Assembly (NCBI GenBank): GCA_030704615.1
Contig: CM060731.1
Coordinates: forward strand, 59,272,001-59,336,000
Direction of reading: 5' to 3'
Source of the DNA: Takakia lepidozioides
Lineage: Eukaryota; Plantae; Bryophyta
DNA: 64,000 nucleotides
Shown here: piece by piece, positions 468-60,191 of the stretch
How positions within the stretch are numbered: the stretch's first letter is position 1
Layout of the letters: each line of letters opens with the position of its first letter
Translations under genes and position numbers: made by a program
The notes under the pieces: model-generated
The model's input: only the letters and a program-made list of their open reading frames with translations
What the model was told of the DNA's origin: nothing
The model's database searches: none

Positions 468-1115
468 TACTCATAAGACGTTGCCGTAGCCTTTGTGGCC
501 ATTGACCCCGCGCTCCATATGAGCGGAACACCAAGGGACAGAAACTACCTTTGTCAGGGGCTGATGCCAGTGGTATGACTTACCTTGGAAAAGACAATTC
601 ATCCGAGTTTTGCAGATATCCTCTAGAAATCCATTCACACGAGCATCGATCTGCTGCGTGTGGTTTGCCCAATAACTAGGCCCTGAAAGGGCCTGGGCTT
701 TTGGCTCAGCCTTGAGACTTTCAAAGTTGGTAAACAGAGCTACACGCAGAATTCCCTTGATGGATTTGAAGAGGACATCTCTCTGGTGAGAGTACCCAGG
801 ACAATGAATCAGAAAGTGAATATTGTCTTCAGGTTGCCCACACAACGGTGTTTGCAACCCCACTTTGCTCTCTGCTTCTGTTTGCTGTTCAAAGGTAGGC
901 TTCCTGCCCTGAGTTTAAATTTCAGTCTAGTCCCGAGGGTGGGTAAACCCTTGAGGTCATCCACGATGGCCTCTCCCATGTCACAGACTGGGAACAAGTT
1001 CAGGGAAGTTTCCTGCCTAACTTCATTTTCATCAGACAATTTCGTGGCAACAGACATGGCTTCGGACACTACAGCTTCAGACTTATCCGGCAGGGTCAAG
1101 GCTTGCGGACTCTAT
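468..1115 (-). mobile_element. 5'-truncated non-LTR retrotransposon 3' end (RTE/RTEX-like), in ATRX intron
   Basis: Frameshifted ORF with C-terminal CPLCGQPEDNIHFLIHC zinc knuckle. Clearly homologous to the copy at 35205-36150 and shares its 3' UTR. Confidence 0.8.
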
Positions 1116-1165
1116 CACTTTAGAATGTAAACACATCCATTATTGCAAAGGTACGGCACACTTAC

Positions 1166-4100
1166 ACAGTAGTATTCCATCAGATTGTTCTGCAGTGGTG
1201 ATCCAGTCAATGCAATTCGGCGCTTTGTTCTCACTTGCTTGAGTGACTGTGTGATATCAGCCTTTCGATTCTTAATCATGTGTGCCTCATCACACACAAG
1301 TAGATCTGGCCCTGGATGCTGCACTCTCACTTATTGGGCGTTAGGTTGCACAACTGTTCAGTTTGCAGAAAGACTACCATTGTAAATCAAGAGTTGATGC
1401 AATTGGGTCAATTTCAAGCAGGAGCAAGCTAGTGGTAAGAATACAGGTCACACGGTGTCTTTCAATGAGTGGGGTACGTTGAACACCTCAATGATAACCT
1501 TGCATGTACTCCTCTAATGTATATCAAATAGCCATGTAAGGTATCCATGGCATGCAGCTCTAGAACCCACAATGCAATTTTCACACGTCTTCAAATACAA
1601 GTATGGTCAATCCTGGCAACTTGCAGATAGGCTGGGTGAGGCGGTGTCAGGTAATAGAAATCTGCAGTCCCCACAGTTGACAGTTGTTCCAAATCAAATA
1701 AACTTGTGTGTCAGTGGGGTAATATGTGGGCATTCACCTGCAATGACACGCAAAGGCCTTCCCTCACAGACTTGTCCTTCACAGTTTTGCCCATGGATAG
1801 ATTGCGGAACGCAGTGTAGCCAATGAGCATGACCCCACCATGCACTTGCCATCTATTAAGGAGATCTGCTCGCTTTACATTGTCCCTGTCCCATAAAAAA
1901 ATATCAATTTTCCATCTTTGAAGGGCTTCTAGGCTATCCCAAGCATGATCACATTCATGACTCTGTGATGGACATCTACAAGGATTAGAACTGCCTGGCA
2001 GCAACCTTAAAGTGGATGCTATAAAGTTCCTTTCTTGCTTGTCTTACTTTGGCCCATGGGCTCGTGAGGATCCCTGCTCCCAATTTCTCTCCCTGTGTTA
2101 TAAAGTTACTTTCTTTCTTTTGTCCGGTGAGTCCCTAAAATAGAGACCCCAAAAGTGGTTATAAAGCCCATGCCCAGTTTACAAAAGCAGAAACTGAGAA
2201 GAAAGCAGAACGGGACCTCCACCACTGACACGGAATCCTTAGATCTTTAGTATCTGCCCCTGATCTACATGAGCTTCCTGCCTCAATCTGCAGGGTACCA
2301 ACTCTGTAGATGTCCGAAGCCCTTAGCAAAGAAATGAAATGGTACTTTATAACGTCCGCGGAAAGAAAGAAAGTCATGAAAATGGCGAGAGGTTCAAGGC
2401 CAGAGGGACTCTAGTAGAACACTGTAGACAAGAGGGTCAGTTGGCGGAGGGGAGAAAACAAAAAAGAAATCTTGTATTGCCCAGAGGAGCCCAGAGAACT
2501 GGGAACTCGAGGAAGCCTTACCGAGCAACATCTTCCAGCATGTACACGGATATGGGTTCTTCATTGGGTGGTTGCCACTTGCGAAACTCGCTGCGCCAAT
2601 TGTGCAGAACATTGACAGGTACTACAATCAGCACTGTTCTCAGCCCCAAGTCCACCTTTTTCAACACTGTGTGTATGAATGCGATTACCTGCAAACCAGC
2701 CATGTACATTATAAACTGTTGGAGATACTTTAGCAATACGTGATACAAACAGGGGATCAAAAACCACCAGTCTTAATTTTGTTAAATTGGAGTGCTATTC
2801 AGATTATCCCCCACAAGTGTACGACAATGTGAGCAAACAGAAGAGGGCTTGCCTGCAATGTTTTCCCAAGGCCCATGCAGTGGGCCAGGATGCATCCAAG
2901 CCCATCAGCATGCGATTTCACCTTATTCACTGACTCGATGCAATTCTCCCACATAAATCGCAGGCCTGCCAACTGCACATCCACTGAATGAGTTGGCATG
3001 TAGAGATGCACCAACTGCCAGCCATGCTGTAATTACAATAGACCCTCTTATTCTAGTTTCTCTCTTGTTGTTCTACTTGAGTCCCTTGGGCCCTTTGGGC
3101 ATAACAATTTCCAACAGCACATCCAAAGAACGAGTTGGCGAGATGCACCAACTGCCAGCCGTGTTGCAAAGACCCAATGCCCTTTTCAATTAGAGAAGGG
3201 CAAGGTAGGAGGAAGGGATAATATTAGAAAGCAGCAGATCTACTACCATTGGTGGAGCTCACTTCAGTTGAGGAACGTACTTTTCTGAGAATAATTAGGT
3301 GTATCTTGAGGACTTTGTCCAAAGAGGCCTTTAAAGAACATGAATTTGCTTCCAAATGAGAAGGGAAGTCAGTTTGGTATTCTCTGAAGCTCATTGAGCT
3401 GGTTGTTTGTCTAACATGATTTCCACTTAATTGGCCAATGCATTGTGAGAAAGGAAGTAAGGAGGAAAATTGTTGTGCCCAAAGGGCCCAAGGCACTCAA
3501 GTAAAGCGCTGTCTGATGGGTAATGTGTATGTGGGAGTGTCTTTTCCTTCCTGTGAACATAGTAGCGAGAACTAACGTGAACGCTGACTCAAGATCACAG
3601 GATCTTTTCTCCCGTTTTGAAGGCCTAGTTAAAAAAGTATGTTTGCAATCCATGTTATTGAAAGATGGGTAAAACCTGATGGGGCCGCAAATGGCCTGAG
3701 ATGACGGGTGAAATTCGCACTTCTTCCTCTTCATCCTGGCGAGCTTTATTCAAGACAAAACCTTCACTTGCAATGTCATCTTCACACATATCTAATTCCT
3801 CCTCCGCATGTGCATGGCGATTTGGATTGCGTTGGGATTTAACAGGAGTACCAGCACCACTAGCTCTAGCAGCCCGCCACTTTTCTACCCGCTCCTGCCG
3901 TTCCTGCATAGCCAAGAAAGCAATAGATCAAGTTTGAGCACAAAAATCCCAACGACTGGGATGAGTACATTCATCCACACATCACAGTTGTAATGAGGAA
4001 ATTGAATCATACCTTCTCGATGGCCACAATGTTCTGCGTCTTTTCGTCAAGTTCATCATCATCCAATGCTCTCCTAATGTTTCTGCGGTGCTTCCCTCTT

Positions 4101-7100
4101 CTGTCCACACACACACACACACACACACCACCCAACTAACAGCAAATAAACATTTGATGGACTCTCCTGAAGGAGTGACTAACTGTTACTGCCAGCAGAA
4201 CTACTGCAAAATGAATCGTTAAGTATGGACTATATGTTTCTGTATATTGATCCAGACTCGGTTTTGTCTTGTGTGTTCTAATTGAAGCATGACAGAAAAG
4301 ATGCTGCTACTAAAACCCCGGGAAATTTTTTTCATGCCTTCCTTTTCTGGATAGCCACCACCCCCCACTTTTTGTCTCTTTCTCAACATCACCAAGCACA
4401 AAAGACAGGTGAAGGGTTGAAAATACCAAATGACTGTAGCACACCTAGAAATCCAGAGCCAATAATGCATGCATGATTTACCATTGAAGTTACCTTGCTC
4501 TCGGCTTCATAATGACCTCTGTGTCACTCAACCCATCCTCATCGAGATTGTGCATAATGTGGGCCTCCGACTGCACTCGCTTGAACTCTTCAACCAAAGG
4601 CTTCAGGGGCTCTGGGTTGCAGGAAAAACAGCGCCAATCCATGCTACTGAGAATATCATGGAGCCTTCTTTCGCCAGAATTGCGAGAAATACAACACTTG
4701 CAAAAACCATTGCCACATTTTCCACAACGTACAATGTCAACCCCCTGCCGGCACCAACCGCAGTTGGCCTCTGAATCTTCTTCATCCTGCATATGATACA
4801 TTCCAGGCCCAACAAGCATTCAACAACCAATGAAAGAACAATAGATCTTGTCTCATTATATGGCTAACATTTTAATATGCAGCAAGAATTAATTCTTCTC
4901 CAGAATCCCAACTTCTTAAGTAACTGCATAAAGAACCTTCTCTTGAGTAAATACAGTGACAACACCTTGCGCAACTCAATACCGAACAAGCCCGTTCCAG
5001 AAGACAACACGGCCTTCATCCTACAGCCTCTGGAAAGTATCATTTCAAGTTGATTCTACAAATTACTTGGACATCGTAACCAACTTATTTGTAGCAACAT
5101 TTAAGGAGCCCAACTAGATTTGGAACCAAAGAAGAGTGAAGTACCTCATCGAATGGGTGCTTTTTGAGACGTTTGTAGCATTTTTTGCAAACGCCTACAC
5201 CAAGTTGCGGGTGCCTGAAAAGGTCAATCTTCTTCAGCAGCATCCCACATGCTGTGCACTGAATATCTCGTGGGTCAGCATCCCGCATTACATTCATGGC
5301 CACTCTTCTATTTTTACGACTTGGGGGCAGAAAATCATCATCATTGGGATCATCATCATCATCAATTTCCTGCAAGAACTTTTCTGCGTTTAGAATCAAG
5401 TGAAAAAGAACAATCCGGATGATAAGTCACAGTTCACAAAAAGGTTCATGTACCACTAGTCGAAGAAAGACAGGTAATGAGGGGAAGGTCTAGCAGTTGA
5501 ACCAAACAAGCTGTGGAGCACCATCAGTTCCACTGGGAGTGAAACAGGTTACCTGTGTTTCATGTATGTCTATGTAGCCCGAGGTGGACTTCTTCAAACC
5601 CCTTCGCCGATATTTCCCGCCAATAATGGCAACCTGATCAGATTCCTTTGAGCCTAACCCAATGAAGTTCTTCATCTTCTCCCCCGTCACATCCCTGAAC
5701 ACTGACCTCTCAGGTGGTTTTGTCTCCCCCATCACTATGCACTCTTCAATTTCCTCACGCTCCCCATCACTGTCAATCACCACTGTAGTTCGAACTTTCT
5801 TCTTTGTTGGAACCTCTGGAAAGACCATTTATCAATGTGAGAGCCTTGTAAACTCAGCAAAGGACAAATAGCTGAAGGGGTTTTCCAACCTCTTCTCCTG
5901 CGGTGAAAATCTTTCGCAAGCCAAGACCATGATCTGTATCCAAAACATGGTGAACTAGATTGATAATTGAAAGATGGAACTAAGGAATGGGGGAAGTCTG
6001 GAAGAGCCTAAAGAGAGGGCTTTCACCACATTGTGCCCCACCCTGGGTAGAGAAGAACAGCAACCTATATGATATTGCAGTGCTCCTATCTTTAAGCTCA
6101 GACTTATGATGCCTCTAAAATTGGTTACTGGCAGACTACATTAGGAAGGCTTGAACATCCCACTGCCTCAGAAACCGGAATCATCCATCCAAAGAATGAA
6201 CATATACTAACATTGCTGCTTCCTACACAGCTTGTCTGATCGGAGCATTGAATGCCCTGCCCTGTGCTCTGTCCCTTGTCCCCAGATACAGGGTAGTCCG
6301 GTCCATCTCGCTGAGTCCAACGAACAAGTAGGGAAAGGGCAAGCTGTTATGAGTTATGATCCCCACATACTAATATGGGCCTCTAACAGATCACTATTGT
6401 GGGACTTGAATACCGTTACCTGCAGGTCTTGGCTGTATTAGTTCAAAACTGTTCATGCATTGAGTTGTTGTTTAGTCTCTTACCCACATTGGCGGGTAAG
6501 CTGAAAAAACACTACCAACTCGCCAAAAGGTAATTACTTTGTGAATTGTGTTTTGTGAAGATTCAGAGGACATCCCACATATTTCCAACCTGTCATATAC
6601 ACCCACAAATATTCACAGTAGTTTCTTCCTTTCTATTATGAGATCCCGGGAGATTCTTGTCTATTCTGAGATATCCAATCTCTCACAGAGGTCTTCCATA
6701 TGAGGATCATACATGCTTAGCTGCATATCTGCACAAGGCTTTGACTCTTAAACAAAGCCTTGAGCAATGAATGTTTTTTGGGAGCATGTGGAGGCCCCTC
6801 TCTTTCTTGGTTCATGCTTTTGCTTGTCCCATGAGCTCTTGGAGCTTTCCGCGGACATTATAAAGTACCATTTCATTTCTTCCAGTCCTCCCCGTGCGAC
6901 ATTTGCTCTCACTGTTTTCGAGTTTAACACTATTCCATCCTACCTGTATGGGAGGACTGGCCCTTTAGACTTCAACAAGCACATTCAACAAACTGAAAAT
7001 CGCCTTGCTCTCTCAAACAGACTCACTCACCGGTGGGTTCCAGGCGTCTTTTGACAGTCTTTAATTGCATTGCTGTCACAGCAGCATCTTCCAACTCAGG

Positions 7101-10100: not shown

Positions 10101-13100
10101 ATTTCTCTTGACTTTACGGATAGGGGCTTACTGCCCACCATCAACAGGGCCCCACTTAACGAATAACTTTAATTTTATCACAAAATGTAATCTAGAGGAC
10201 TTGAAGCGAAGAGCCTTCAAATCCACAACCAACCTGGTGCGATGTACACATTGCCTCCAATACCCAAGTAACTTATGTGGATATGAATAACTACCTTCTT
10301 CAGAGAGGTTTTCTGCCCATCCGTTAACCCACGTTCTCCTTCATTTGCCAAAGCTTCTGTAAAGAGGTTACCCTTCTCAATCTCAATATCGCCTATCTCC
10401 TCCACCTGCAACAAACAAACACACAAAACCCCCTGTTGTCTCTGATTCTATAAATGCTAAATCTACTCTTTCATTCACCGTAATATTCATCCATACTGCC
10501 TACTCAAGGACATTCCTACATGTATCTTGGACAAGGTGGAAAGACAAACAGAATTCTCACAGGTTATGTTAACAACAACATTGCAAGTTCCTCTAACAGA
10601 GCAAACTGTAGCTATAAAATTGCATGTTCTCTTCAGTCTAAAGGTCAGCAAAGTTATGACGCCATTGGAGTATTGTCAACACCAGCAAGCCTTCAATATT
10701 GACCACTCTGAATAGGTTATACAACACCCTGCCATGCAGCAAGCTTACAAATGTGGGTACAATCACATAAAAGTAGATCTCACATGAGAGTACATAAGAA
10801 ACCTTGCAGAACTGCCCTCAACTCAGTGTCCTGAAAAACCAACACTAATGCTCTTCCCAACCCAAAATATCCTGGTGGCACTGCACTTCAAAGTAGAGTT
10901 GTGACCCTGTCGAACAAGGAGAACCTCATTATTGAAACCATTGAAGACGATACTTACGCTGTCAACACCAGGTAGGTCTAATCCCATTCGTGCTGCTTGC
11001 TCAGGCGTGGAAGCCAAGTACACAGCTGCCCATTTCTGGGTTCCCATAAGGCTCCCAGGCATCGAAAACTCCTTATCTAGACACTCCACCAGCGACCATC
11101 CATCTTCTGCTGAGGGTCCTTCAGCAGGGACCCTCACTTTCCTCTCTAGAAATCCACTTGCCCCTTCATCTTGAATCCTTCCATGGTGCCTGTATATCCT
11201 CACATCAGACTCCAGGTTAACTCTGTGTAGCCAAACAACCAAATTACTGAGGCTCAACGCAATGCCTAGCGTATTGAAGTAAAACTTCCTACCAAATGTT
11301 GCATGTGGGTTCAATTCAATCAAGGTTTGTTTCTCCTATCCACAGAAGGTACTGTCCTACAACAATCATGTCGAACAAGGTGCATATGATGTCTAGCCTA
11401 CAATTCCGAGAATGAACCCACAGACAGAAGGAAATGATAAGTCCGTCCTTGTACCTTCTTACTGGCCTCAGAGTTCTCAGCTCACTCTCAGCCTTGCTCA
11501 CAACTTCGAAGACTTCTTGAGTGGCTTGTAGACCTACCCAGTGAATCCTTTTCTTCCAGGCATCAGTTGTGCAGTCTTCAGAAGCTTGTTTCTCAACTTG
11601 TTTAAAAAGATCAGGAAGATTCACACCAGCATCATCCAATTTCTCCTATACGAAAAGAGATTTTCTCTCATCAGTTCACCCAACTTAAAACATGTATTAG
11701 TCTTAGATTAGACACAAAGTAGGATGGCACATCATAAACAGCCACGGGAACGCAACGAGCTTCTAGGGCAAAGAAGTGATCTCACAACCAACTCACACTA
11801 GTTTGTATGATGGTATCCTTGTAGGCTTCTTCTACTTCTTGGGCCACTCCGACCTCTCTGTTCCTACATATTAACTAGACAGATGGAAGACATGAATGTG
11901 AGATCAGAAAAAACAAGCAAACAGAACGAAAGGAAAAGGCAAGAAAAGTTGAGACCTGCAAGAGGGAGCTTTGATCCGCCAGTTCCGCAAAAGTCTCCTC
12001 CCACTGCTCCATATAATTGCTCATTTCTTCACTGACTGCCGCCTCCAACTGCACTATGGTCAATACAGGACTAACTCTTTCAGATAGTGGCTGGCAACAC
12101 AGCCAGGCCTAAGCAGAAGAAGCATTTACAGGCAGGATTCCCGTACCGTCGTTTGAAGACATCTGTTTCACTGCTTACCCGGGATTCAGTTTCTACTTCA
12201 TACCCCAAAATAATTGCAGACTATAGTTATATAAAACATCTTATTTGCTTCTCCAAATGGCTTGCTATCTTGACTGTCTGAGAGAATGTACTCATAAAAC
12301 CTTGTATGCCGTAGCCTTGTGGCCTTGATACCCACCATCTCCCTCTTGTCTCAGGGAGAGAGATGACGCCAACCAACGTTAGCAAAAACGAGAGCATCTT
12401 TCCCTTGCGGGTTCTGTCTGGAACATACACTCCACCGCTTCGCTGAGAAAACCACATACCTCAGATCCAGAGTAGGTCTCTGCAAGCTCCAGTCGCACAT
12501 CCTCTCTGACATGCTCCATCGATTCATCCTCCAAGGCTTCCTGCGCTTCTGCAGCCTGAAGAATTCCATCCACAGAACTTAGGTCAGAAGGACATATGTC
12601 ATCACTCCACTAGAGTACTTAGCAACCAGCACACCTACGCCAGTCTTGAAATATGCTTAACACAAGTAAACAAGTCCCAAAGGCATTAAATGCTGCCAAT
12701 GGTTCCAGGACATGGGTACGATCACTGGCTGGTGGTTAACTTCAAGTTTGCACCGCAAGAAGTTAGCCCGGTTAGTAACTAAGCTAAAAATAGAACCTGA
12801 TAATATCTCTTGCTGGGAACAATGAAACTAGTCGAATAATCAGTACATCTTCAACATACAGGGAATATGACTTTCATGTGCTAAGACAACCAACATGATG
12901 CAATAGTAGTAAGTTGAATGCCTTGTCATTCTCCGAGAAGAAGTAGATAGGTACCTCACTCTCTACTTGCAGAAGCCGATCAACCAGTTTTTGGATCTCC
13001 TCATCTGTGAGAGGAACCTGCCAATCCAAAAAGGATGTCATCTAGTTATTGGCTCTGGGAAACACATGCGGAAACAGATGCGCAGACACTTGTGAATTTC

Positions 13101-13402
13101 TAGCAGCTATTACTGCATTCATTAGTGAAGACCTTCCAGGGCGAGTGAGACAGTCAAAATCACTCGTTAGATACGATTGACATGTCAGAAACCTTCAAGT
13201 ACCCACCTCATTGCTGGACTCCTCTTCCTCTTCAGAGAGGAAGGCACGATCATCATCATCATTCACCTCATTCCATTCTTCTTCTTCCCCGTCATCCTCT
13301 TCCACTTCCTCTTCCTCTACTTCTCCAACAAGTAAGTCCCCCAATCCATCCTGGTCTCTTTCCCTGCTTGCTACTTCATTACCAGAAAGCTCCTCTGGCC
13401 AT
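1166..13402 (-). CDS. ATRX: ATRX-like SNF2 chromatin remodeller (plant CHR20 type), multi-exon, 3' part beyond left window edge
   Basis: Exons read: acidic exon 13402-13207; [21 protein letters not shown] 13017-12955; [12 protein letters not shown] ~12555-12460; WKKRIHWVG ~11640-11455; GASGFL...[14 protein letters not shown] ~11190-10967; ADD zinc fingers [17 protein letters not shown] (~5400-5144) and CGWC..CGKC..FCKCC..WRCFSC (~4787-4493); SNF2 motifs [15 protein letters not shown] (~2972-2853), [12 protein letters not shown] (~2688-2520), [26 protein letters not shown] (~1312-1166). The splice junctions that were checked are phase-compatible. Confidence 0.95.
4107..4129. repeat. (CA)n microsatellite
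   Basis: cacacacacacacacacacaca next to an ATRX splice acceptor. Confidence 0.9.
6755..6900 (-). repeat. Dispersed repeat, probably a retroelement remnant; related copies near 2330-2375 (+) and 62510-62660 (-)
   Basis: Shared core ttgtcccatRagctct..gagctttcYgYggacRttataaag..tttcatttc; translates as [14 protein letters not shown] / LYNVHRKLIELMGQ. Confidence 0.55.
12278..12335 (-). repeat. Short copy of the LINE 3' UTR terminus
   Basis: Reverse complement ggccacaaggctacggcatacaaggttttatgagtacattctctc matches the 3' ends at 468-505, 35065-35110, 35205-35245 and 62380-62430. Confidence 0.75.
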
Positions 13403-13700
13403 CTGTTAAAGAACCACTTTGCTCTATAAGAATGGTAGCATTGAGGCTTCTGTTGCTGGCAGTACTTACCCACACAGAATGTCAGGATACTCCAAATAAA
13501 TGCAATCAACTTTGAACGCCTTGCATAGTACTTACCAAGAGAATCAAACAACTTGGGACAATTATACTGATACCAAAAGCTGTAATCTATTACCCTGAGG
13601 ACAAAATATACCAACACCAAAAGCTGTAGAACTAATTCTCTAACTGAACAAAGAGAAGGATATGAGAAGAATTGGAACTTTCTTTAACCACTAAACCTAC

Positions 13701-16578
13701 TTTAGATCAGAAGGGATGACTGATGTAGGGATCAAGACCCCAATACTGCTGGGAGAGGCTGCAGCTTCAGCTGCCAGTGCTGAGTTTGTAACCTCTTCCC
13801 TTCTTTCAATTTTATGCTCATGAGTCATATTCATCTCCATCACAGCATGTGTGCTGGTGCTTCTATCCTCTTCTGCATTCACATCTGTCATGCCTCCCAA
13901 AAGTCCCAGTAAGTTGGTTAGTTCTTCCCTCATCACCAACAGATGAAAGATGATGCTTCATTTGACAATATCAGGCCCCCATACGATTAGTCAACAGAAG
14001 GGGAAAAAGGCATCTAAACACAAAAATTAACTACTGGATATACCCATCGTTGTTTAAAGTCATAATGGATCACCCATTGCCAGTGGAACCTAGTATCAAG
14101 TGTTTACAGAGGAGTTGCTGCAGTGACTACTATAAGGAGCTTTACTTCAGTGTCCGTACCCAGTAGGACAAATTTATCGTGATCTTACAAGGCCCTATTA
14201 TGCCTGTGCTTCACGAGGCAAGGAAAAACTCTTGAAGCAAGAAACAAATCAAAGACTAACAAAATAGCAACCAACTCACTGTGTCCCATCTGTTCCAGCT
14301 GCTCCATTCGTCCCAACTTGTCCAACCATGCCTTGATCTCACCAGGCCTTTCAGGAGCACAATTCCCAGCTTCCAGGAAGGCAGCCCTGGCATCAGGTGT
14401 CCTCTTCAGCGAGCAGAGAGCAATGCTGTTGCAGACCCCAGAATAATGATTAATTACACTGGAAAGTCAGTAAAGGGGAGGGCACAATTCACTCAAAAAA
14501 GGTAAAGAGGAAAGAGCTACAACTGCATATGACAGTCCAGTTGGAGAAGGCCAAAATGACATAGGAAAAGGAGAACTTTGGTGGACAGCAACAGCATAAT
14601 GGATCAACATACCCCTTCCTTGTGTAGGCCTCCTTCAGAGCTGGTTTAAGCTGAATGGCTCTGTCAGCATCAGCAGCTGCTTCTGAAATATACAATCAGC
14701 TTTTATGAGCACCAACCACAGACTCATGTTGTAGACAACAGGGGAGCAAGATAGGGAACAATGTCCACATGTACATATACCATTTCAGAATGGCCAACCC
14801 AACCTAGAGCTGCCACAAGTTTGAGATACTCACCATTACCTGCATTATTAAAGGTCACCGATCAAACAAGCTGTGCAGGCTGGTGTTTCTGATCATTTCA
14901 GTTAGGCAGAATGCTTGATGATATGTGGGTGGTGGCCTTGAGGGAAGAGATGGATACACTGAGTGGGTGGGAGTAAGAAGAGCTCAACTCAAATTACAGG
15001 TTGAATCAAGGCACATGCACCCGACCCTTGGGATTCCAAAGTTAAGGCAGATATCCCATCCAACTAGATGAAAATATCATTATGGCACCACCCATCTAAG
15101 CAACTACAGTTGATTTTGCTCTGATCCCTGGCTAGCAACTTACTGCTACAAAAGGCCCACTCCATCTACCCAATCTTGCAAAATGACGAGAAGTGCACAC
15201 TCAATGGTTCCAACATGACCACCAACAACTGAAATTCTTGTAAACTGAAACACAAACAAACTCAGGCGACCTGTAGAAAGCATGACTTGCACAAGTTCTC
15301 AGACCAAAGTTTATCATGTCCTGTCCCACAAACATCCATCCCACATTGAAATTCACAACTTGCTCCCATCTGATGAAAATTCCTCTGGCGACCAGTGGCT
15401 TCTGTTTGGCTTGGTGTTGTAGAACTTCAAGGGGCCTGATGCTTTTGAATTTGTTTGCTGATGAATTGATTTTGAGAACACGAGCATCAAATGAAATTGC
15501 ACACCATCTGGCTTATTTTAATCTTTACGTACATTACCTCCTGCCTGGCTCATGCGGACCCTAAATGCAATTGAAGCCAATTCATTAGTCTGCCATCGGG
15601 CAGAATGCAGGCATTATTATAGCACCATAATTTATAATTATGTGTCACCAAAGAGTACAGTTTGTAGTTCATAACACACAAATGCATTCTGCACCTAAAT
15701 ATGCATGTGGCCAGAGAAGCCTATAGACTGTTTATTAGTGCAATCTGAATAAGACAGCAGGTACATACTTCACAGGGCGCAAAATTGTCTGAACTACAAA
15801 CAGCAATATCATAACCAGCAACATCTGAGACAAATGGAGATAGTTTTGGATGGTGCGATAAAAATGCCCTTTGAGACCCACGCTTGATTGTGCGCAGATC
15901 CTGTAGATTGACAGATGGTTCAGCAAAAAGTAAGAAGCATACTCCTTCAATTAATGAGGTTTTTCCTTACATGCACAGGCAGCAGGCCATGCGAATTGCT
16001 ATAATCAATAAGGCTATGATGACATGAGCAGGAGAGAAGAAAGGAAGCCATAGAAAAGGCACCGGCGGTGAAAAAATCCAAAGGGTGCATGTGCACAAGG
16101 TGGTTTTGTATCTGTAACTCTGCACCTTACTGTGGGAAGGGGCATGGTATAAGGAAGAAGACTCGAAGATGTACTCAGTAAAAATTCCCTGGACAGATTT
16201 AACCCACCAAGGAACAAATCTCAGAGGTCACGCATACCCCTTCAGTTTTCTCTTCTAAGAAGGAAGTGGCTAATGCTGCACTGGCAGTAAGTGAAAAGGG
16301 CACAAGAGACAGAGAGCCAAGTGAAGAAGATGAAACAGAAGGGGACAGTGGAGGGGGAGGCAGAGAGCTAATACCCTGCGGATAGCTCTCAACAACAAAC
16401 ATGTAGTCAAGGTAAAGATGACAAGAAAAGTACCTGCAAATTTGTGATCAACGCAGTGTCGAATAGAGCGAACAACATAGAGTTGTGCACTATTGGGGTT
16501 GGCCTTAATGGCCTTGTCGCAGACCGCGAGCCTATGATCTAGCTTCAATACAGCATTTCCTCTACCGCTCTCCTCCAT
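13701..16578 (-). CDS. SGT1-like N-terminal exons (TPR domain plus linker), probably fused to ATRX
   Basis: Exon1 16578-16434 (MEES..CDKAIKANPNSAQLYVVRS..KFA, phase 1); exon2 14682-14613 (EAAADADRAIQLKPALKEAYTRKG); exon3 14425-14280 (IALCSLKR..AAFLEAGNCAPE..AWLDK, phase 1); candidate exon4 13872/13884-13701 (phase 1 in, phase 2 out). No stops or frameshifts. Resembles plant SGT1 (EAVADANKAIELDP..KAYLRKG) including intron positions. Confidence 0.8.
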
Positions 16579-18199
16579 TAAGAGAACGCAAAGCCTTCAA
16601 CATTGCACAGAGAAAATGGGCAACGGTGGGAGCGGATGAAGTCGAGAGGTATTTTACCTGCGATCAACTGACCATCAAGAATTAAGCAGGACCGTGTACG
16701 TGGTGTATTCGAGAATGGCCCACTGGATACAGACTAAGAGAAACAGAGACAAGGAAGGTGCAGAGAATGACACAAGAGAGCGGCAAATACACGGGGCTCT
16801 ATGGCAAGCACGGTGCAGCGTGCATAGACAGGCACAGATGAAAGGCGAACAGCGTCAGATGACAACTTTCTCTCTACGAGTCAGAGAAAGAGACAGTCTC
16901 TCAAACTGAAAGGGAGACTACCAGACTCCGAAGACGTTGTGCCTTCACAACAACATAATTCGATCAGTGTACACCCCACTTCCTTGGCGAGCTATGAAGA
17001 ATTCTGTCTGGAAAAATGCTAATGACTCGGAGACGACAATGAGAAGGACAGGCGGGATTGGCCGCCAACCTCAGAACTGAGAAAGAGTCTTTACAAATTG
17101 GTGACTGTCATATGGTAGGGTGAGACTCAAGATCGAAAAGCGGAAGCGGGCTAACCCTGCGAATATAAGGTACAAGATGGACAGAAAAGCCCTCCGAACT
17201 GAAGGAATCCTGCATCAAGTTGTCGCCATGATGAAGAGCAATTTGATCACAAAAACTCGCGTCTTCAGTAAGACGGAATGACAACATCTCATAACACCAA
17301 ACACCAACAAGAGAATGGCAGTAGGCTCGAAGCGCGATTCTCATGTGAACCGAGAAGGAGATTCTACTCAGCAGAAGGAAAATGTTTCAAGTTCTTGATC
17401 ACATGACACACCTATACTTAGCTTGACGGGAACAAGTCAGGGCACAGAAAAAGTACAATACTGAGATGGATCCCTCTTCAAACATTAGCGCAACGATACC
17501 TGAATGGCCAAGTGTAAGCGCGTCCTCGACTGAAGAAATATAACCTACTCCACCAACTATCTTTCAAAGATCTCCATCCCGTAGAGGGGAAACCAGACTA
17601 GACGACAACACGGTGAAGTTTGAAGTAAAGGAAGAAGATTTCTTTCTGTGCTCCCCGCAAAACATTTGTGATCAAACTCGTCCCTCATCTCTATCGCCAT
17701 TTACACCCTCCCTTCACAAACTCCGAATCCCTAATACCCAATGCCTCTGCAAGCTCCATCTCATGACTGTGTGCATTTGAACACAGGACCTCACCCTACG
17801 CTGCCCTAACCACCAAATCATGCTTTATCGGAGCTTAAAACACGGCCTAATACCTATTAGATCAAGGAAATGGGACATTTTTTAATCCCCCATTCAATTG
17901 ACGCGATGAATGGAGTTGAACCCGGCACTAGTGCACTGTGAGGTACAAATTCAAGCCCGTCTGACCAGCAAACCTTCCCGCGTACGCTACCCTTATACCC
18001 AAGTCTGACGAACGATTTGCACGTCAGTATCACAACGAAAGGCGCAACCGAGCTAGCTGGTCGCTTCACCGTCTATTCCCCGCGACAGGGGTTACATTCT
18101 CACCCAAGTTAGGCGGCGGCCATCCCAATATTACAACTCCAGATATCAACGGCTGAAAAAAATCCCAGGGAAATAAGAGAGAAACATTTCTTATTTTTA

Positions 18200-32995: not shown

Positions 32996-35900
32996 TCACA
33001 GCTCCCACTTCTTCATCTCCATGCCTGATGGGGCACTCCATTCAATTGTCTTGCTACCCACCTCTTGCAGTTGGTAGACAGCACCCTACCAATTGACTCA
33101 ACCTGCAGGGATAGCAATCCAGAAATTCATTAGTCATATTGAGAAGTACCAAAGGTCTAAGGAAGACAACCAACATATAGAATGAAAATTACTCCATGCT
33201 GTTCTTTATCTTGATTCACTAATTCTGGGCCCCTACTACAAAGGACCAACACTTATATGAGCACTTGCCATAAGCTGAACATGTGTGTATATAATGAATT
33301 GACATGAATGGTTTCTTTATCTCAGACCATAGCGCAATGAAAGCCCATCTCCCCACGGGAGTCACTTAAAACACAAATGTTCTCCAATTATAGTATTGTC
33401 CTTGTCAGACTGGCGGTATTACAATGAAATACACTGTACCAACACAAGCTGCAGCCAATACAAGTTAAATCTTGGCAGTGAAAAGCCTGGAGGCTTTACT
33501 GACTTGGCAATAAGCCTCCAGAAGTACACTGTCGAGGTACCACAGTGAAAATAGATCAGGGGGATTTACAAATCGACTTGTTCATGGCCAGCTGCATATC
33601 CTCATTAGCATTTTGGTAAATTGCCCGGAATAGCTTGTTCAAAGCTGCATCCCCTTCTAGTTTTTCATCCTTTTCCTGCAGCACAAGGTTGCTTCATTTC
33701 AGAAAGGGGCAGAAGAGCTGGGGGAAAGGAGAATGATAAGCAAAATGTGGTCCATCAGACAAGGCCAAAAGCATCCGGTTTCAAAGTCTAAAATCAAGTT
33801 CATCTTAGATCCCAGAGACCAAGGCAGCCAAAGACAAAACCTTCCTTTCGCGTGCGCTCAAAATACGCACCAGAGACTGTGTAAGCAGCCTGAGAAGGAA
33901 AAACAACAAGAGCATGATGCTGTCACAACATTTCAACGCAACAAAGAAGAGATACCCACCTCCTTCACTTCAGCCTCCAGCTTGTCCCAGTCCTTAGGCG
34001 GCTATTTACTGGATGTTGGGTACTTGGTCTTGCACTCCACACAGTCTGTCATACCAGTGCACCACCTTCAGCATAAGATATGGCACTGCTTTTACTTGAG
34101 AAAGAAGGTCACAAAATAAGTAAGGTGGAGACAACCGAGACAAGATGCTTGAGTTCCACCCCGACCAACAGACGATAGTCCAGCCCCTGGCTGTGTCAAA
34201 AGGTTACTGCCTTCCTAGTTACTTCCAAAGGATGCTCTCTGCGTTGGCGAGCTTTATCTCTACTTCAGTACTCAACAACCTGTGCATGCATTGTGGTGGA
34301 ATAAAGTTTATCCTGTTCAGCAACATAGCCAGGTCCCTCTACTTCCACAGAGACGCACATACAATTACCAACCCGAAATTCTGTGCAAAAGGTCATTGAT
34401 GCCTCGCAAGCAATTGGAGCTTAACTTACCTTACCAAACAAACAAAGCAAAGCAAACGGCTCTTCATGGTCAGTGTTGATGACACACTCATTGGCAAAAC
34501 AAGTATATTTACAATAATTAATGGCCTTGTGGAATGAACACCCTGGCATCACCTAGCCACCTGCTACAACTCCAAAAAATGATACTTGATCACTTCCACA
34601 CTCCTAGAGAAAAAACAGGAATAGACGTAAGGAAACAAAACGGGGAAAGAAGAATAAGAGAGCCAAACTTACAGTCTGCTCTCCATAGTTGCCAGACACA
34701 GATAACACAGTCAGTGGATGAGATTACAATGGACGCAGACAGACAAACAACAAAGAAGACATCCCGCGAACCTCTCCAACAGAATAAATATGCAATTGAG
34801 GCCTTCGTTTGGACAAGCAGCTTGTGCAAGCCAAGGTCTGTACTGCCCCAATATTGCAGTCTATCCACAAGTAAGAATTTTGATGGTATAGAACACAATC
34901 CAATAGAAGGAAGGGCCTCTCACTACACACTCATAGAAGTCCCTCTTTGAGTATGTATGCGAAACCGTATCCATAAGCATGGCGCAGCTCAAGGCCCTGA
35001 GGGATCCCAGCTGCTCACATAAAAGCCAATCAACATTTCAAAATAGACACTAGTGCCTTGGAGAGAAAGAATGTACTCATGAGACATTGGCTGTCGTAGC
35101 CTTGCAGCCATAGACCCCGTGCCCAGTTTGGACAGATCAAGTGGGAACAGACTACCTTTGTGTGGCGCTCCCTCCATAGTGGTGGTTCAGGCCTGGTAGA
35201 GGATGTACTCATAAGACGTTGTTTGCCGTAGCCTTCTGGCCATTGACCCCACGCCCAGATTGAGCAGAAGGGACAGAACCTACCTTTGTCAGGGGCTGAC
35301 GCCGGTAGTAAGACTTCCTTGGAATAAACAATTGGTCCGGGTTTTCCAGATATCCTCTAGAAATCCCTTTAAACAAGCATCAACCTGCTGTGTGTGGTTT
35401 GCCCTATAACTAGGCCCCAAAAGGGCCTGGGCTTTTGGCTCAGCCTCGAGAATTTCAAAGTTGGTAAACACAGGTACAGGTACAATTCCCTTGGTAGCTT
35501 TGAAGAGAGCGTCTCTCTGGTGAGAGAACCCACAATGAATCAGAGAATGAATATTGTCTTCACGTTGCCCACACAACGGGCAATTGCACTCTCCCTTTCC
35601 TCTCTGCTTCTGTTTGCTGTTCAAAGGTAGGCTTCCTGCCCTGAGTTTAAATTTCAGTATAGTGCTGAGAGTGGGAGACCCTTGAGGTCATCCATGATGT
35701 CCCCCATGTCACAGACTGGAAACAAGTTCAGGGAAGTTTTCTGCCTAACTTCATTTTCATCAGACAATTTCCTGGCAACATACATGGCTTTGGACACTAC
35801 AGCCTCTAAGTCAGATTTATCCACCAGGGTCAAGACTTGTGGGCTAAGATTCAGATCCTTGAGAATCTCTTCTTCTCTCTTTTGCCAGGACTTAGCCTGG

Positions 35901-36793
35901 TTGACAGGGCAATCCTGCTTCCAAGATATAGAGTCGATTAACTTAGGATATCTGATGTTGGACATATGTTGCAGCTGATCCCACCATCTGACCTTGAGTT
36001 CATCTCGTCGGGAGCTTAAGGAAGGGATGCCAAACTCACCGCGAACAGCCACATTGGCTGTTTTGGAGCATGCTGACATGCAGTCCTAAAGCACCCCCAC
36101 TTGAATGGATTCTAGAGACTTAGCCTGGTTGGAGTACACCTGGTAGAGAAAGAGGGAGAAAAAGACTATTCGGTTTAGCAGGTAGGGAAAGATCTTCTCT
36201 TTTCAACCTTTATCTTGGTCTTTCCAGGGTAGTAAGACATCAGACATACATCTCTCTTCACACACGGTGACAGTGTCATAAGTTCTTTCACTGTGATACA
36301 CCCTTGTTAGTTTGTTACTCTTGCAAGCCACAAAATGACATACCTCTCTGGCCGACATCACTTGTTGATTTTGAAATGCTCCAAAATTGAGTTTATAATA
36401 TCATTTCCATTGTCATTAGAAAAAACACTCATCTACAAAAGAGTCCAAGAAACAGCACTCCAGCCACCCCCTCCACCCTATTGCTCATACTAGGGTACAT
36501 TCAGATTGAGTTGCTTTGGTCACTATTTACCAATTGCTTCATGAGGATACACTTCACCTCAGATCATCCACATGAAACAAACACCTAACCTGCTTTTCAC
36601 AGTGGAAAATAGACAACAGTATACTTGAATTTGGCTGGTCAAGGAGGTGGTGGGGGAGGAGCAGCAACTAGGGCCGAAGGAGGCTTGATTGTAACAGGCC
36701 ATCTCTCTGCAACAGTTTCCAATGGTGCTTTCTCATCATTGGTATCTGGCGCCACTGCCACTTGAGCGTGTTTCCCAGCAACTTTGTGTTCCT
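32996..36793 (-). pseudogene. SGT1: SGT1 pseudogene (linker, part of CS domain, SGS domain)
   Basis: Exons: EEHKVAG..PPP*PAKFK (36793-36625); FIPPQCMHRLLSTEVEIKLANAESILWK* (~34310-34215); YPTSSK*PPKDWDKLEAEVKE (~34030-33960); EKDEKLEGDAALNKLFRAIYQNANEDMQLAMNKS (~33677-33570); VESIGRVLSTN/frameshift/KEVGSKTIEWSAPSGMEMKKWEL* (33102-32996). Confidence 0.9.
35060..36150 (-). mobile_element. 5'-truncated non-LTR retrotransposon (RTE/RTEX-like) plus an extra tandem 3' UTR copy, inside the SGT1 pseudogene
   Basis: ANVAVRGEFGIPSLSSRRD..RYPK and CNCPLCGQREDNIHSLIHC; homologous to 468-1115; second 3' UTR copy at 35060-35165. Confidence 0.85.
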
Positions 36794-52640: not shown

Positions 52641-53803
52641 CCTGGCCACAAGATTTCTTTTGGCTCTCTCTCTTTTTTCAGGATTTTTTGCTTTAATGTT
52701 TTCATTGCACTTTTTGAGGATTTAAAACAAAACAAAAAAATTCCGCTCTATTGTGTTCCCGCTATGTTGGACCCGTGTAACTTCACCTCTTGGATGGATG
52801 ACGTTTCCGAAGATGGATGAGATGGGAGGGCGGCTACCGGTGAATGGACGTAAAGAGTGAAGGTTGGATGAACCGCATCCGTGTAGCTTACGAGAGCGAG
52901 CCCTCGCCGCTCTGGTTGTTTGCCGGTCTCTGTGTAGAGAGAGCCCTTCGTCTCCTTCGTCTCGGATCCATTCCTGCTTGGCGCTTGTGGACTAGGTTGT
53001 GTGCGTGCCAAGCTTTTCGAGCATCTTCTGAGCATGCATTTTGGTGTGCATCGTTTTTCATTTTCCGACTCTTTTTTTCTTGTCTCAGTGAGGTGGTTGA
53101 AGATTTCGTTCTCCTATGAGGAGTAGTGGCTTCTCTGATTGCAAACCTGCTGCTTTGCGTCACTTCTCTGCATCTGGACCGTTTTAGAAAGCTGGGTCAT
53201 TGTCGTGGACCTAAGAAATCTGTCCTCCTCTAGTCGATGTATCTAGGACGAAGTGGGTTTAGTATCTAGGAAACACTGAAGAGCGGGGGAGAAGATAAGG
53301 GAAGGCATTGTATGGATGCAGCGCACAGCGAGGTGTTGATGCCAGTATGGGAGAAGAGCCTACCCAAACGATTTGATTCAAGCAAGTCTGCAAGACCTTG
53401 GACAGTTGGGGCAAATCTGCAAAAAAGAAACGACATAGGAGTACCATGGAAGCGAGACTGTAGGGGGAAATCGTCGAGTGGAGGTTCAATTGTTTACTTT
53501 GCCAGAACAGGATCTGCAAGTAAGAGCAGTCTGTATTTTTCTTATTTCCGTTCGTGACAGTGCCAGTTGCAAGCAGCATCCTGATTCATTCAAGGGCCTT
53601 TCGACAACAAGGGATGTTTTCAAGTACGCGGGTTCTTATTTGGAGATTACAAGTTGCGGGAAGAACATTTGCACAGCTTTGTGGAAGCGAAGAACGGCCA
53701 CATCGACAGTGGAAGGGTTGCCCGGAAGAAGCTCAGGTAATAAGGCTTAAGCTGAGTTAGGACTTCTCGAAGGCAAGTAGTCTACGCCTCTGAAGTGACC
53801 ACG

Positions 53804-56800
53804 ATGATAATGGATGTCAGTCCTAGTGTTGGAACTCAACATGGTGGTGGAGAGCGTTCAACTCATTGGACAAGGTTTGCTTTAGGAATTCCACTTACTA
53901 CAGATTCGAATGCCTTAGACAAGGCTCAAAGTGAAAGTATGTCCACATCAGGGGATGAAGGTGTGAATATGAAGGTAAGGAAGCCTTACACCATCACCAA
54001 GCAGAGAGAGAGGTGGACTGAAGAGGAGCACCAGAAGTTCTTGGAGGCCTTAAAACTTTATGGTCGAGCCTGGCGCAGAATTGAAGAGCACATTGGCACC
54101 AAGACTGCTGTTCAGATTCGAAGCCATGCGCAAAAGTTCTTCTCCAAGTTGGAGAGGGATGCTACAGCTGGGGGCGGCCTCCCTCCAGGAGAGGCACATG
54201 CTATTGATATTCCGCCCCCGCGCCCCAAGAGGAAGCCCAGTCATCCGTATCCTCGGAAAGCTGGGGGAAGCTTCTATAAGAATTCAGAAGATGATAGCCC
54301 CCTGTTGTCAGCAGTTTCCGCAGGTACTCCTGTGGTGGCCACCCTTGGAGACGGCTGTATGAAGCATACCAGGGAGCAAGATGAAGTGCCAGAGGTGTGT
54401 GAAGACTCTCCGAAGCGGACAAAGCAAATGCCTCAAAAAGAAAACCCACCATTACAGGAAGGAGAGGCCATGTTTGCAAGGCACAGTCCTGCCATCAACC
54501 ATTGGGGTCACTCTGAGTCCAGTTTTGTGCCATTTCAGCATGGGACAGCGACAGTTGCACATCATCTGGCTGCTGCGTTAAGTGCAGGTATGCGAATGCA
54601 GCAAGGTAATAACTTGCCCGCAAAGCCCGAGGGGTTCCAGAACAGCCTCATGGAATTCTCTGGTTTCCAACAGGCGTACTTGGGACGCTTCCATGGGCAG
54701 CAGGTCCCTCATCATCCAGCCTACGGGAATCTGCAGAATTTGGCTCGAATTGTGGGGCTTGCAGCACCCAGAGGTATGGTCTTACCTTGGAGTCAATACC
54801 CGGCTGTTCCATCACCCCCACCCCGGGATCTGTCAGCCATGGCTGCCGCCGCAGCTGCAGCTGCAGCGTTTTGGCCTGCTCTTGTGTCTGGGGCGACCAC
54901 TACAGGAATGCCAGAGGCCACTTCCGCAGATTATGAAAGCGCGACACAACTTGGAGCAAATGGCTCAGCGGAAAAGCCGAATACCCCTGAGGATTCAGGT
55001 GCAGCAGCAGCCGTCGCAGCGGCCACCCTTGCCGCCGCATCAGCGTGGTGGGCTCTTCAAGGTGCTGTGCCTCCAGGTACGGTACTCCCTGGTGTGGGAG
55101 CTGTCTACAATCCGATGATGCTAGCTGCAGCAGCAACAGCAGCTAATGCTGCTGTCTCCATACCCACACCACACCTTACTCACCAAGCTAGGATGTGGAA
55201 ACAAGAGGCTGAAAGGTGCCCTGAGGGTTCTGGTGTGGATGGAGAGGCCGGGACTACAGAGGATTTTCTGCTGGAAATCGCAAGTAGTAGAGGGACCTCT
55301 ATGAAATCGAGCGCAGCCCGAAGGGCAGAGAGGGCATTGCGAGTGAAGGAGAGTAAGGCTCGGCGAGGTACCGGGATTCATTTATCCACATCATCGCCGG
55401 GGGAGTCTGCACTGAAGCCAATGAATTCAGGTTGCGGGGAGCATGGGCGTGAAGCTGGGCAGGGCACTGAAGCCACTAGGAGTATTATTGAACCTGCTAG
55501 CGGAAGTCTTTCTCATGCTAACACTTCCAGAGAGGCTCTCCGTGAAGTTAACAAGCAGAAGAATGAGCAAGTCGGGAAGAGAGAACGTATGGTCAGCCCC
55601 GGTAGCTCTCAGGATGTAGAGGAAGATGACCGGAGGAAACTTATGAGAGGGAGGTCCGTAAGTGGGTCCAATTCTCTGCCAGGGAAGTATGCAGTTGGCC
55701 ACCTGGACAAGCGTGCAGCGCAACTGACTCCTCCCGAAGCATCTTCTGGCAGTGATGGGAGTGGGAGTGATGGTACACCTGTTGATGGGAATGTGTCAGG
55801 GGCTGGCAGCCGAAGCTCCAACTCATCAGCCTGTGGGGCCCAGCCAGGGGGCACCCAACAGTCAGGCTGGACTGATGGTTCTTCAGATGTGGAAGGAGAA
55901 GTCCTTCCTATCCGAGTCAAGAAGGATGGGCCGAGTTCATCAGCAGCAGACATGGCTGAGAGAGATCGAGAAAATGCAACAAAGAATAATATGAGGCACT
56001 CCACCAGTGGTATAAGTATGAATATGTCCAAAGATGGTGAGAAACATTCACATAACCAGAGACATTTGGTGGGTGGTGCACAGGATGTTGTAACCAGGGT
56101 GCAAAAAAGCGCAGCACTTGATGGTGAGCAACGGAAAGAGGTTACTGGGGAAGGTCGGATGGCTTTTCAAGCCCTTTTTTCTCTGGAGACATTACCACGT
56201 TCATTTTCGCCTCCTCCTCGGTCATCTCTCAAGCCCAATGATCCTTTGGCACACAACAAAGTTTCTCCTTCTGAGGGGACTGTGAAACAATCCCAATTCC
56301 ACGGGGATTTCACCACCCGTGTTACTCACAGCAGAGCCACCCCTTGTGAAGGGGGTGTCCCCCCTATCCTCCTGAAATCTTACAGTAAGGTTGCAGGGAT
56401 TGGATTCAATGCTTGGGAGCCTCTCAGAGCGGTTGATGGTTGCGAAAGTAGCATCACGATGTCGTCCCTCCGGCCAGGCAAGAGCCCAGACGAGCTGGGA
56501 TCTTTAGAAAGGAAGAGGAGTCTCAAGAAAATGGAGAGGTGCAGGAGTGTGGCCACCAGCTGGCTGAAACTCGGGACGCAGACCTCAAGCCTCCAAGGAG
56601 AGGAGGGGGTTGATGACCAAGATACAGCGGGAACTGCAGATGAAAGTTGTCGCTCTAAACAGGAACTGGCTGATAGGGAAGAGGATGTTTCCAGTAGTAG
56701 TTTGGATTCTTCTGAGAGGGGGAAGAAAAGTTACAGATCTAAGTTATGTGTTGATGGCAGACTCGACAATGGTTTTGGTTTTAAAAATGTCACCACCAAA

Positions 56801-56938
56801 GCTAATACATTGGCTTTACACATAGCTGGCTCACAGGCCCCTCTCTCCACTGTTTCCAGCACTGGAAGTGTAAAATATAGTGGTTTAGGATTTGTGCCAT
56901 ATCAAAGGGTTTCCTTGGAACCCTCTCTTAAGCTATGA
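53804..56938 (+). CDS. CCA1: CCA1/LHY-clade single-MYB (SHAQKF) circadian clock transcription factor, intronless ORF of ~1000 aa (start at 53804 or 53939)
   Basis: KVRKPYTITKQRERWTEEEHQKFLEALKLYGRAWRRIEEHIGTKTAVQIRSHAQKFFSKLE, IDIPPPRPKRKPSHPYPRK, and the LHY-specific motifs AAATLAAASAWW, EGRMAFQALFS..LPRSFSPP and GFVPYQR. Confidence 0.95.
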   Translation: MIMDVSPSVGTQHGGGERSTHWTRFALGIPLTTDSNALDKAQSESMSTSGDEGVNMKVRKPYTITKQRERWTEEEHQKFLEALKLYGRAWRRIEEHIGTKTAVQIRSHAQKFFSKLERDATAGGGLPPGEAHAIDIPPPRPKRKPSHPYPRKAGGSFYKNSEDDSPLLSAVSAGTPVVATLGDGCMKHTREQDEVPEVCEDSPKRTKQMPQKENPPLQEGEAMFARHSPAINHWGHSESSFVPFQHGTATVAHHLAAALSAGMRMQQGNNLPAKPEGFQNSLMEFSGFQQAYLGRFHGQQVPHHPAYGNLQNLARIVGLAAPRGMVLPWSQYPAVPSPPPRDLSAMAAAAAAAAAFWPALVSGATTTGMPEATSADYESATQLGANGSAEKPNTPEDSGAAAAVAAATLAAASAWWALQGAVPPGTVLPGVGAVYNPMMLAAAATAANAAVSIPTPHLTHQARMWKQEAERCPEGSGVDGEAGTTEDFLLEIASSRGTSMKSSAARRAERALRVKESKARRGTGIHLSTSSPGESALKPMNSGCGEHGREAGQGTEATRSIIEPASGSLSHANTSREALREVNKQKNEQVGKRERMVSPGSSQDVEEDDRRKLMRGRSVSGSNSLPGKYAVGHLDKRAAQLTPPEASSGSDGSGSDGTPVDGNVSGAGSRSSNSSACGAQPGGTQQSGWTDGSSDVEGEVLPIRVKKDGPSSSAADMAERDRENATKNNMRHSTSGISMNMSKDGEKHSHNQRHLVGGAQDVVTRVQKSAALDGEQRKEVTGEGRMAFQALFSLETLPRSFSPPPRSSLKPNDPLAHNKVSPSEGTVKQSQFHGDFTTRVTHSRATPCEGGVPPILLKSYSKVAGIGFNAWEPLRAVDGCESSITMSSLRPGKSPDELGSLERKRSLKKMERCRSVATSWLKLGTQTSSLQGEEGVDDQDTAGTADESCRSKQELADREEDVSSSSLDSSERGKKSYRSKLCVDGRLDNGFGFKNVTTKANTLALHIAGSQAPLSTVSSTGSVKYSGLGFVPYQRVSLEPSLKL

Positions 56939-60117: not shown

Positions 60118-60191
60118 TAGGAATGACAGGATTTGAACCTGCGGCATTTTGCACCCAAAACAAACACGCTACCAAGCTGCGCTACATCCCT
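60118..60191 (-). tRNA. trnP: Plastid-type trnP-UGG, organellar insertion
   Basis: AGGGATGTAGCGCAGCTTGGTAGCGTGTTTGTTTTGGGTGCAAAATGCCGCAGGTTCAAATCCTGTCATTCCTA; full cloverleaf with anticodon TGG. Confidence 0.9.

Follow-up and report, generated by a model that had tools for sequence, protein, structure and literature searches.

In human and Arabidopsis, ATRX is built of an ADD domain plus an ATPase/helicase (2025 review, PMC12607251); the term 'tetratricopeptide' is absent from that review, and our literature search found no paper linking ATRX with SGT1 structurally or with a tetratricopeptide repeat (TPR) domain. That the domain architecture of ATRX can be rearranged in evolution is documented in Drosophila, where the protein is split into an ADD gene and a helicase gene, dAdd1 and dXNP (PMC12607251). 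Here, we describe a 64,000-nucleotide stretch of Takakia lepidozioides DNA (GenBank assembly GCA_030704615.1, contig CM060731.1, positions 59,272,001 to 59,336,000 of the forward strand; hereafter the window), in which three exons coding for a TPR module lie ahead of an ATRX gene on the minus strand. As in Arabidopsis AtATRX/CHR20 and animal ATRX, the window exons encode an ADD zinc finger and then a SNF2 ATPase; they differ in that an in-frame TPR module stands ahead of these domains and that the start codon of the ancestral ATRX has been lost. We judge an in-frame TPR-ATRX fusion to be the best explanation of this locus and, from the comparison of its exons with those of related mosses, a fusion transcript is probably real. 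In contrast to the fission seen in Drosophila, ATRX would here have gained an N-terminal domain.

The module appears to resemble the N-terminal part of SGT1, a three-TPR domain of about 120 residues, with the difference that no CS or SGS domain follows the TPR here. Self-association of the SGT1 TPR has been described in both plants and yeast, and Skp1 binding in yeast, whereas HSP90 is not bound (PMC3979677, PMC5282575). The arrangement is also reminiscent of exon-shuffled chimeric genes that arise by 5' exon capture, in which a partial DNA-level duplicate with its introns supplies promoter, ATG and N-terminal domain, a phase-compatible acceptor of the existing gene is used, and the old start codon then decays. 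Most described exon-capture chimeras are young and lineage-restricted, whereas the arrangement of the window is common to two lineages as distant from each other as other moss loci are (60-73% identity in conserved ATRX exons).

Exon structure of the TPR-ATRX region

Positions 12800-17200 of the window were read on the minus strand, the exon model was rebuilt and all coordinates were checked by script, which confirmed every exon coordinate, splice site and phase given in an initial annotation of the locus. In the following list, L001 to L008 designate related ATRX loci, among which L006 is that of a second TPR-bearing species.

16434..16578, minus strand: TPR exon 1 (E1), 145 nt, ATG at 16578, phase 1 out; script-checked; homologue of the same length in L006, with the ATG kept
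14613..14682, minus strand: TPR exon 2 (E2), 70 nt, phase 1 in, phase 2 out
14280..14425, minus strand: TPR exon 3 (E3), 146 nt, phase 1 out, GTGAGT donor at 14279
13885..14279, minus strand: proposed intron 3, or spacer between a TPR gene and ATRX, 395 nt; no conservation with L006 at the nucleotide or protein level
13701..13884, minus strand: E4, by homology the ancestral first coding exon of ATRX, 5'-extended; alternative start at 13872; phase 1 in, phase 2 out
13207..13402, minus strand: E5, acidic ATRX exon, phase 2 in, phase 0 out; homologous acidic exons in L006, L002, L001 and L008
12955..13017, minus strand: E6, conserved 21-codon ATRX exon, 78% DNA identity to L006; present in all related loci
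5085..5399, minus strand: ATRX ADD-domain exon (Pfam PF17981, ADD_ATRX)
1115..3014, minus strand: ATRX SNF2 ATPase exons (Pfam PF00176 in three exon open reading frames); the gene runs off the window start

The minus-strand gene below position 13400 is a moss-type ATRX with an acidic N-terminus, an ADD domain and a SNF2 domain, since its exon open reading frames (ORFs) match ADD_ATRX and SNF2-rel_dom. Indeed, PF17981 is found at 5085-5396 (minus strand) with an E-value of 2.5e-8 and 34 bits against a curated cut-off of 25.7, and PF00176 is matched by three exon ORFs (E 5.6e-5, 2.5e-7 and 2.5e-13) that cover profile positions 2-172. A Helicase_C match lies downstream in the orthologous locus L006, a part of the gene that in the window falls beyond its start.

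Upstream of ATRX, the ATG of E1 is the first one in frame, with a stop six codons 5' of it, and E1 to E3 join into 120 codons without a stop that end in phase 1. The proposed intron 3 contains CTAAC 33 nt 5' of a CAG acceptor; two phase-1 exon starts, 13884 and 13872, follow CAG acceptors. E4 then ends at 13701 in phase 2 with an AA/GTAGGT donor, and E5 is open in phase 2 only, with no in-frame ATG upstream. In this way E1 through E6 form one open frame of 268 codons in the window (281 in L006), while retention of intron 4 would stop translation at once, a TAG standing immediately after 13701. Codon usage is coding-like in E2, E3 and E5 (p <=0.02) and weaker in E1 (0.11) and E4 (0.08); it is clearly non-coding in the 25 in-frame codons just 5' of the E4 acceptor. 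No inverted repeats were found around the TPR module. A strongly pyrimidine-rich stretch (16600-17000, minus strand) with a CAG/GTAAAA near 16660 lies upstream of the E1 ATG; it may correspond to a promoter, or to a leader interrupted by an intron.

A selected TPR module and its ancestry

With a conserved ATRX exon ORF of the window (10826-11335) as query, exon-sized ORFs were retrieved from genomic contigs of relatives, and five related genomic loci were compared. L006 is Logan SRR36092047, L002 to L005 belong to one species, and L007 and L008 come from the JGI metagenome 3300013314; these last are two differing ATRX-like contigs from a single boreal-moss metagenome and represent either two host species or two paralogues. 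A search of related ATRX loci for a TPR, as the initial annotation had proposed, was positive for L006, where tblastn with the window exon peptides placed homologues of E1, E2 and E3 at 1544, 2948 and 3169, upstream of the ATRX exons and on the same strand. No TPR exons were found in the available upstream sequence of L002-L005 (5.1 kb), L001 (1.9 kb) and L008 (0.7 kb).

The two TPR-bearing loci agree closely in exon design. From E1 to E6 the exons measure 145/70/152/220/193/63 nt in L006 and 145/70/146/184/196/63 nt in the window, with identical phases and with length differences that are all divisible by three; in both species E1 retains its start ATG, which is the first in frame. E2 is 73% identical to its L006 homologue in protein and 79% in DNA, and E3 is 56-59% identical to its 152-nt counterpart in L006, which likewise ends in phase 1. 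A DNA alignment of the two loci is possible in the exons only and not in the introns. The TPR module is a selected coding module under purifying selection: its ratio of nonsynonymous to synonymous substitution rates (dN/dS) is 0.26 (dN 0.32, dS 1.23, over 117 ungapped codons), with bootstrap values of 0.13-0.45 and no replicate reaching 1, and its DNA identity by codon position is 66/78/51%.

The 3' border of the module is informative as well. Reading through E3 gives 31 codons in the window and 30 in L006, unrelated to each other, before a stop, and we found no conserved tail, stop or terminal exon; the spacer between E3 and E4 (395 nt in the window, 281 nt in L006) is equally unconserved. 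The phase-1 donor of E3 is kept in both species despite the 6-nt change in E3 length. All eight acceptors checked (E2, E3, E5 and E6 in both species) are CAG, and in each species the first well-formed CAG acceptors 5' of the old ATRX start form a tandem pair in phase 1, spaced by 12 nt in the window and by 15 nt in L006. Judged by conserved ATRX exons, the closest relative of either of these two loci is the other (73% identical, versus 60-69% to the remaining loci). The two species are separated by dS >1, and the distance between them equals that between L001 and L002; since the two divergences match, the TPR-ATRX arrangement is old.

Where the module came from is less clear-cut. Similarity searches with the TPR were run exon by exon, and all Pfam TPR matches of single exons fell under the cut-offs. 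The best solved match of E2 is the plant SGT1 TPR (9uib_A residues 55-76), with an E-value of 0.0027 for E2 alone and of 2.9e-5 for the two-species profile, SGTA coming next. E1 matches TPR proteins generally in the PDB profile search, including residues 25-46 of the same SGT1 structure (E 0.05), collinear with E2 and at the same +5 offset. For E3, in a further difference from SGT1, no relative was detected among solved structures, and its language-model look-alikes are generic TPR clusters with scores <0.9, which we take as a lead only. These matches are short, and the TPRs of SGTA, Hip and Sti1 score only slightly under that of SGT1; on these sequence matches, SGT1 ancestry is plausible but not established. 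The claim that ATRX captured the SGT1 promoter and N-terminus has to be divided: in the comparison of the two species the TPR exons are conserved, selected and phase-compatible with ATRX, whereas their assignment to SGT1 has fared less well.

The TPR-ATRX locus is in any case not an SGT1 gene, because the CS and SGS domains are absent. Nothing CS-like stands between E3 and ATRX, a six-frame motif scan was blank for the CS domain and a motif scan was blank for the SGS domain (both weak tests), and tblastn found no further SGT1-like segment in the window. The SGT1-like pseudogene that had been announced for the window could not be recovered either, tblastn and a loose motif scan giving no second copy.

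E4 and the lost start codon of ATRX

The exon that connects the TPR module with ATRX had initially been taken for the linker exon of SGT1, and the acidic exon for the first exon of ATRX. Both assignments give way to another one when the TPR-less mosses are considered. In L002, L001 and L008, the coding part of ATRX opens with a short exon that carries an ATG and ends in phase 2, with the acidic exon next in line. ATRX exon 1 of L006, L002 and L001 shows homology to the 33 codons at the 3' end of E4 (shuffle p 0.006 for the window versus L006, <0.0002 for L006 versus L002 and 0.02 for the window versus L001). Because its last 33 codons are homologous to the ATG-bearing exon of TPR-less loci, E4 is, by sequence, the ancestral first coding exon of ATRX, and the acidic exon the second coding one. 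The SGT1 linker was rejected as an identity for E4 on the same homology, which extends to ATG-bearing first exons in three TPR-less mosses.

In a gap-free alignment, the ancestral ATRX ATG stands opposite AGG in the window and GGG in L006. On the 5' side of its old position the frame is open for 85 codons in the window and for 113 codons in L006, and these 113 codons contain not a single in-frame ATG. An exon that is conserved as protein and that lacks a start codon, as E4 does in L006, would therefore be entered from an upstream coding exon, for which the TPR exons are the sole candidates. In the window, E4 and the open stretch upstream of it contain in-frame ATGs at 13933, 13891, 13840, 13834 and 13828; the initial statement that ATRX has no methionine of its own thus holds for the acidic exon and fails for the window E4. 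The 5' extension of E4 may be a fast-evolving linker.

In L008, a plausible leader intron can be made out in the region 40-690: its candidate donor, GTAAGG, stands near position 48, and its candidate acceptor, ttttcag, precedes the ATRX ATG (at 691) by 24 nt. Should this intron be real, its acceptor would be of the type available to a captured upstream exon.

Competing explanations and significance

Several observations weigh against a fusion. In the window, the ATGs at 13840, 13834 and 13828 lie 10-14 codons before the ancestral start, which makes independent initiation of ATRX possible, and the 5' extension of E4 has no significant similarity to that of L006 (p 0.7), so that the openness of its frame is what speaks for its being coding. 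In L006, the acceptors were picked knowing the required phase, the donor of E3 (GTACAG) is a weak one, and that of E4 is of the GC type (GAG/GCATGT at 3820/3821, against GT in the window at the same codon position), probably marking a GC-AG intron; moreover, an in-frame ATG at 4087, just 5' of the acceptor of the acidic exon, could start ATRX. Protein searches were also negative: E4 found no relative among 1.84 billion representative proteins, apart from one spurious repeat protein, and the E1-containing ORF found no match among proteins of 56-178 residues, the species being apparently absent from these collections, since the best matches of its LHY/CCA1-like ORF are only 34-35% identical. Scanning metagenomes with E4, and likewise with the alignment of E3, gave no match.

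Part of this evidence would fit a locus that makes both forms, a promoter upstream of E1 yielding the fusion, and internal starts or intron retention yielding plain ATRX or a short TPR-plus-E4 protein. The ATGs retained in the window E4, the stop that immediately follows E4 when intron 4 is retained and the tandem phase-1 acceptors of both species would each suit such a dual output; the lack of internal ATGs in L006 does not, and we hold this explanation to be possible but on the unlikely side.

The same ATGs near the ancestral start, together with an E4 extension that is not demonstrably conserved and the weak E3 donor of L006, could also be read as the sign of two genes placed head to tail, namely a TPR-only protein encoded by E1-E3 and an ATRX with its own promoter in or near the spacer and its start at an ATG of E4. 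In that case, the TPR protein would end either by read-through into the 395-nt spacer, with its 31 additional codons, or by use of a minor acceptor. The acceptor exists as the initial annotation had indicated (at 14090 in its numbering), as tag/GT with an exon start at 14089, and leads after E3 to six codons and then a TGA; the stops needed for read-through are likewise present in both species. Against two genes stand the E4 of L006, which has no in-frame ATG in its open codons although it is so similar to coding exon 1 of L002, the unrelated tails after E3 in the two species, the shortness of an unconserved spacer that would have to accommodate a promoter, and the persistence of the phase-1 donor through a change in E3 length. 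The absence of a match for an E1-containing protein of the expected size points the same way, as a weak argument given the coverage of the collection. All in all, we regard two separate genes as rather unlikely; they would leave a conserved SGT1 paralogue made of the TPR alone, in tight linkage with ATRX, a finding of minor interest.

Finally, that the TPR exons are a dead, non-coding fragment of a duplicated SGT1 in the promoter or leader of ATRX would agree with the presence of TPR exons only, with no CS or SGS part, and with the sub-threshold Pfam scores of single exons, but this relic reading was rejected as highly improbable in view of the dN/dS, with no bootstrap replicate at 1, and of a frame, an ATG and splice sites that are intact in two species at dS >1.

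Elsewhere in the window, two similar ORF pairs (471-1130 and 35289-36079, both on the minus strand) resemble the 3' part of a retroelement and have a cysteine/histidine motif and a tail in common; one of these copies sits in an ATRX intron, between SNF2 exons. The LHY/CCA1-type ORF (53795-56938, plus strand) is unbroken over 1047 codons and encodes a SHAQKYF MYB protein, and Sphagnum is among its closest full-length relatives in the protein collection; the species itself is a moss-like land plant of deep branching. A tRNA gene (60118-60191, minus strand; Rfam RF00005, 61 bits) adjoins a PPR-like ORF at 60676-61038.

Returning to the TPR-ATRX fusion, its origin can be pictured as follows. In the common ancestor of the window and L006 species, the 5' end of ATRX would have gained a DNA-level copy of three TPR exons coding for about 120 residues. 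This duplicate, landing upstream of ATRX, would have brought the TPR exons with their introns, together with an ATG and probably also a promoter. The phase-1 donor of E3 was most likely spliced to a CAG acceptor in the formerly untranslated 5' part of ATRX exon 1, and this E3-to-E4 splice, which we infer, would have placed the old ATRX leader in frame for translation. The original start codon would thereby have become dispensable and then been lost. The predicted product begins with the TPR module and continues through a linker of poor conservation and the acidic region to ADD and SNF2. By analogy with SGT1, the TPR would be expected to act in self-association or in the binding of a partner such as SKP1, and not in HSP90 binding.

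To conclude, we lean towards the view that one moss lineage has an old and selectively kept TPR-ATRX remodeller, in which an exon-shuffled TPR of the SGT1 type would have replaced the start codon of ATRX and would give this H3.3-linked remodeller a head for self-association or docking, possibly coupling it to SKP1/SCF or to chaperones. If so, this raises the questions of whether the TPR dimerises ATRX or recruits a partner, and whether a TPR-less ATRX can complement it. From animals to Arabidopsis, descriptions of ATRX give ADD plus SNF2, and a conserved additional TPR at the N-terminus would make a new architecture of this remodeller. It would also provide a clean case, open to dating, of a domain gained through 5' exon capture, in which the ancestral ATG-bearing exon 1 is still visible in sister lineages.

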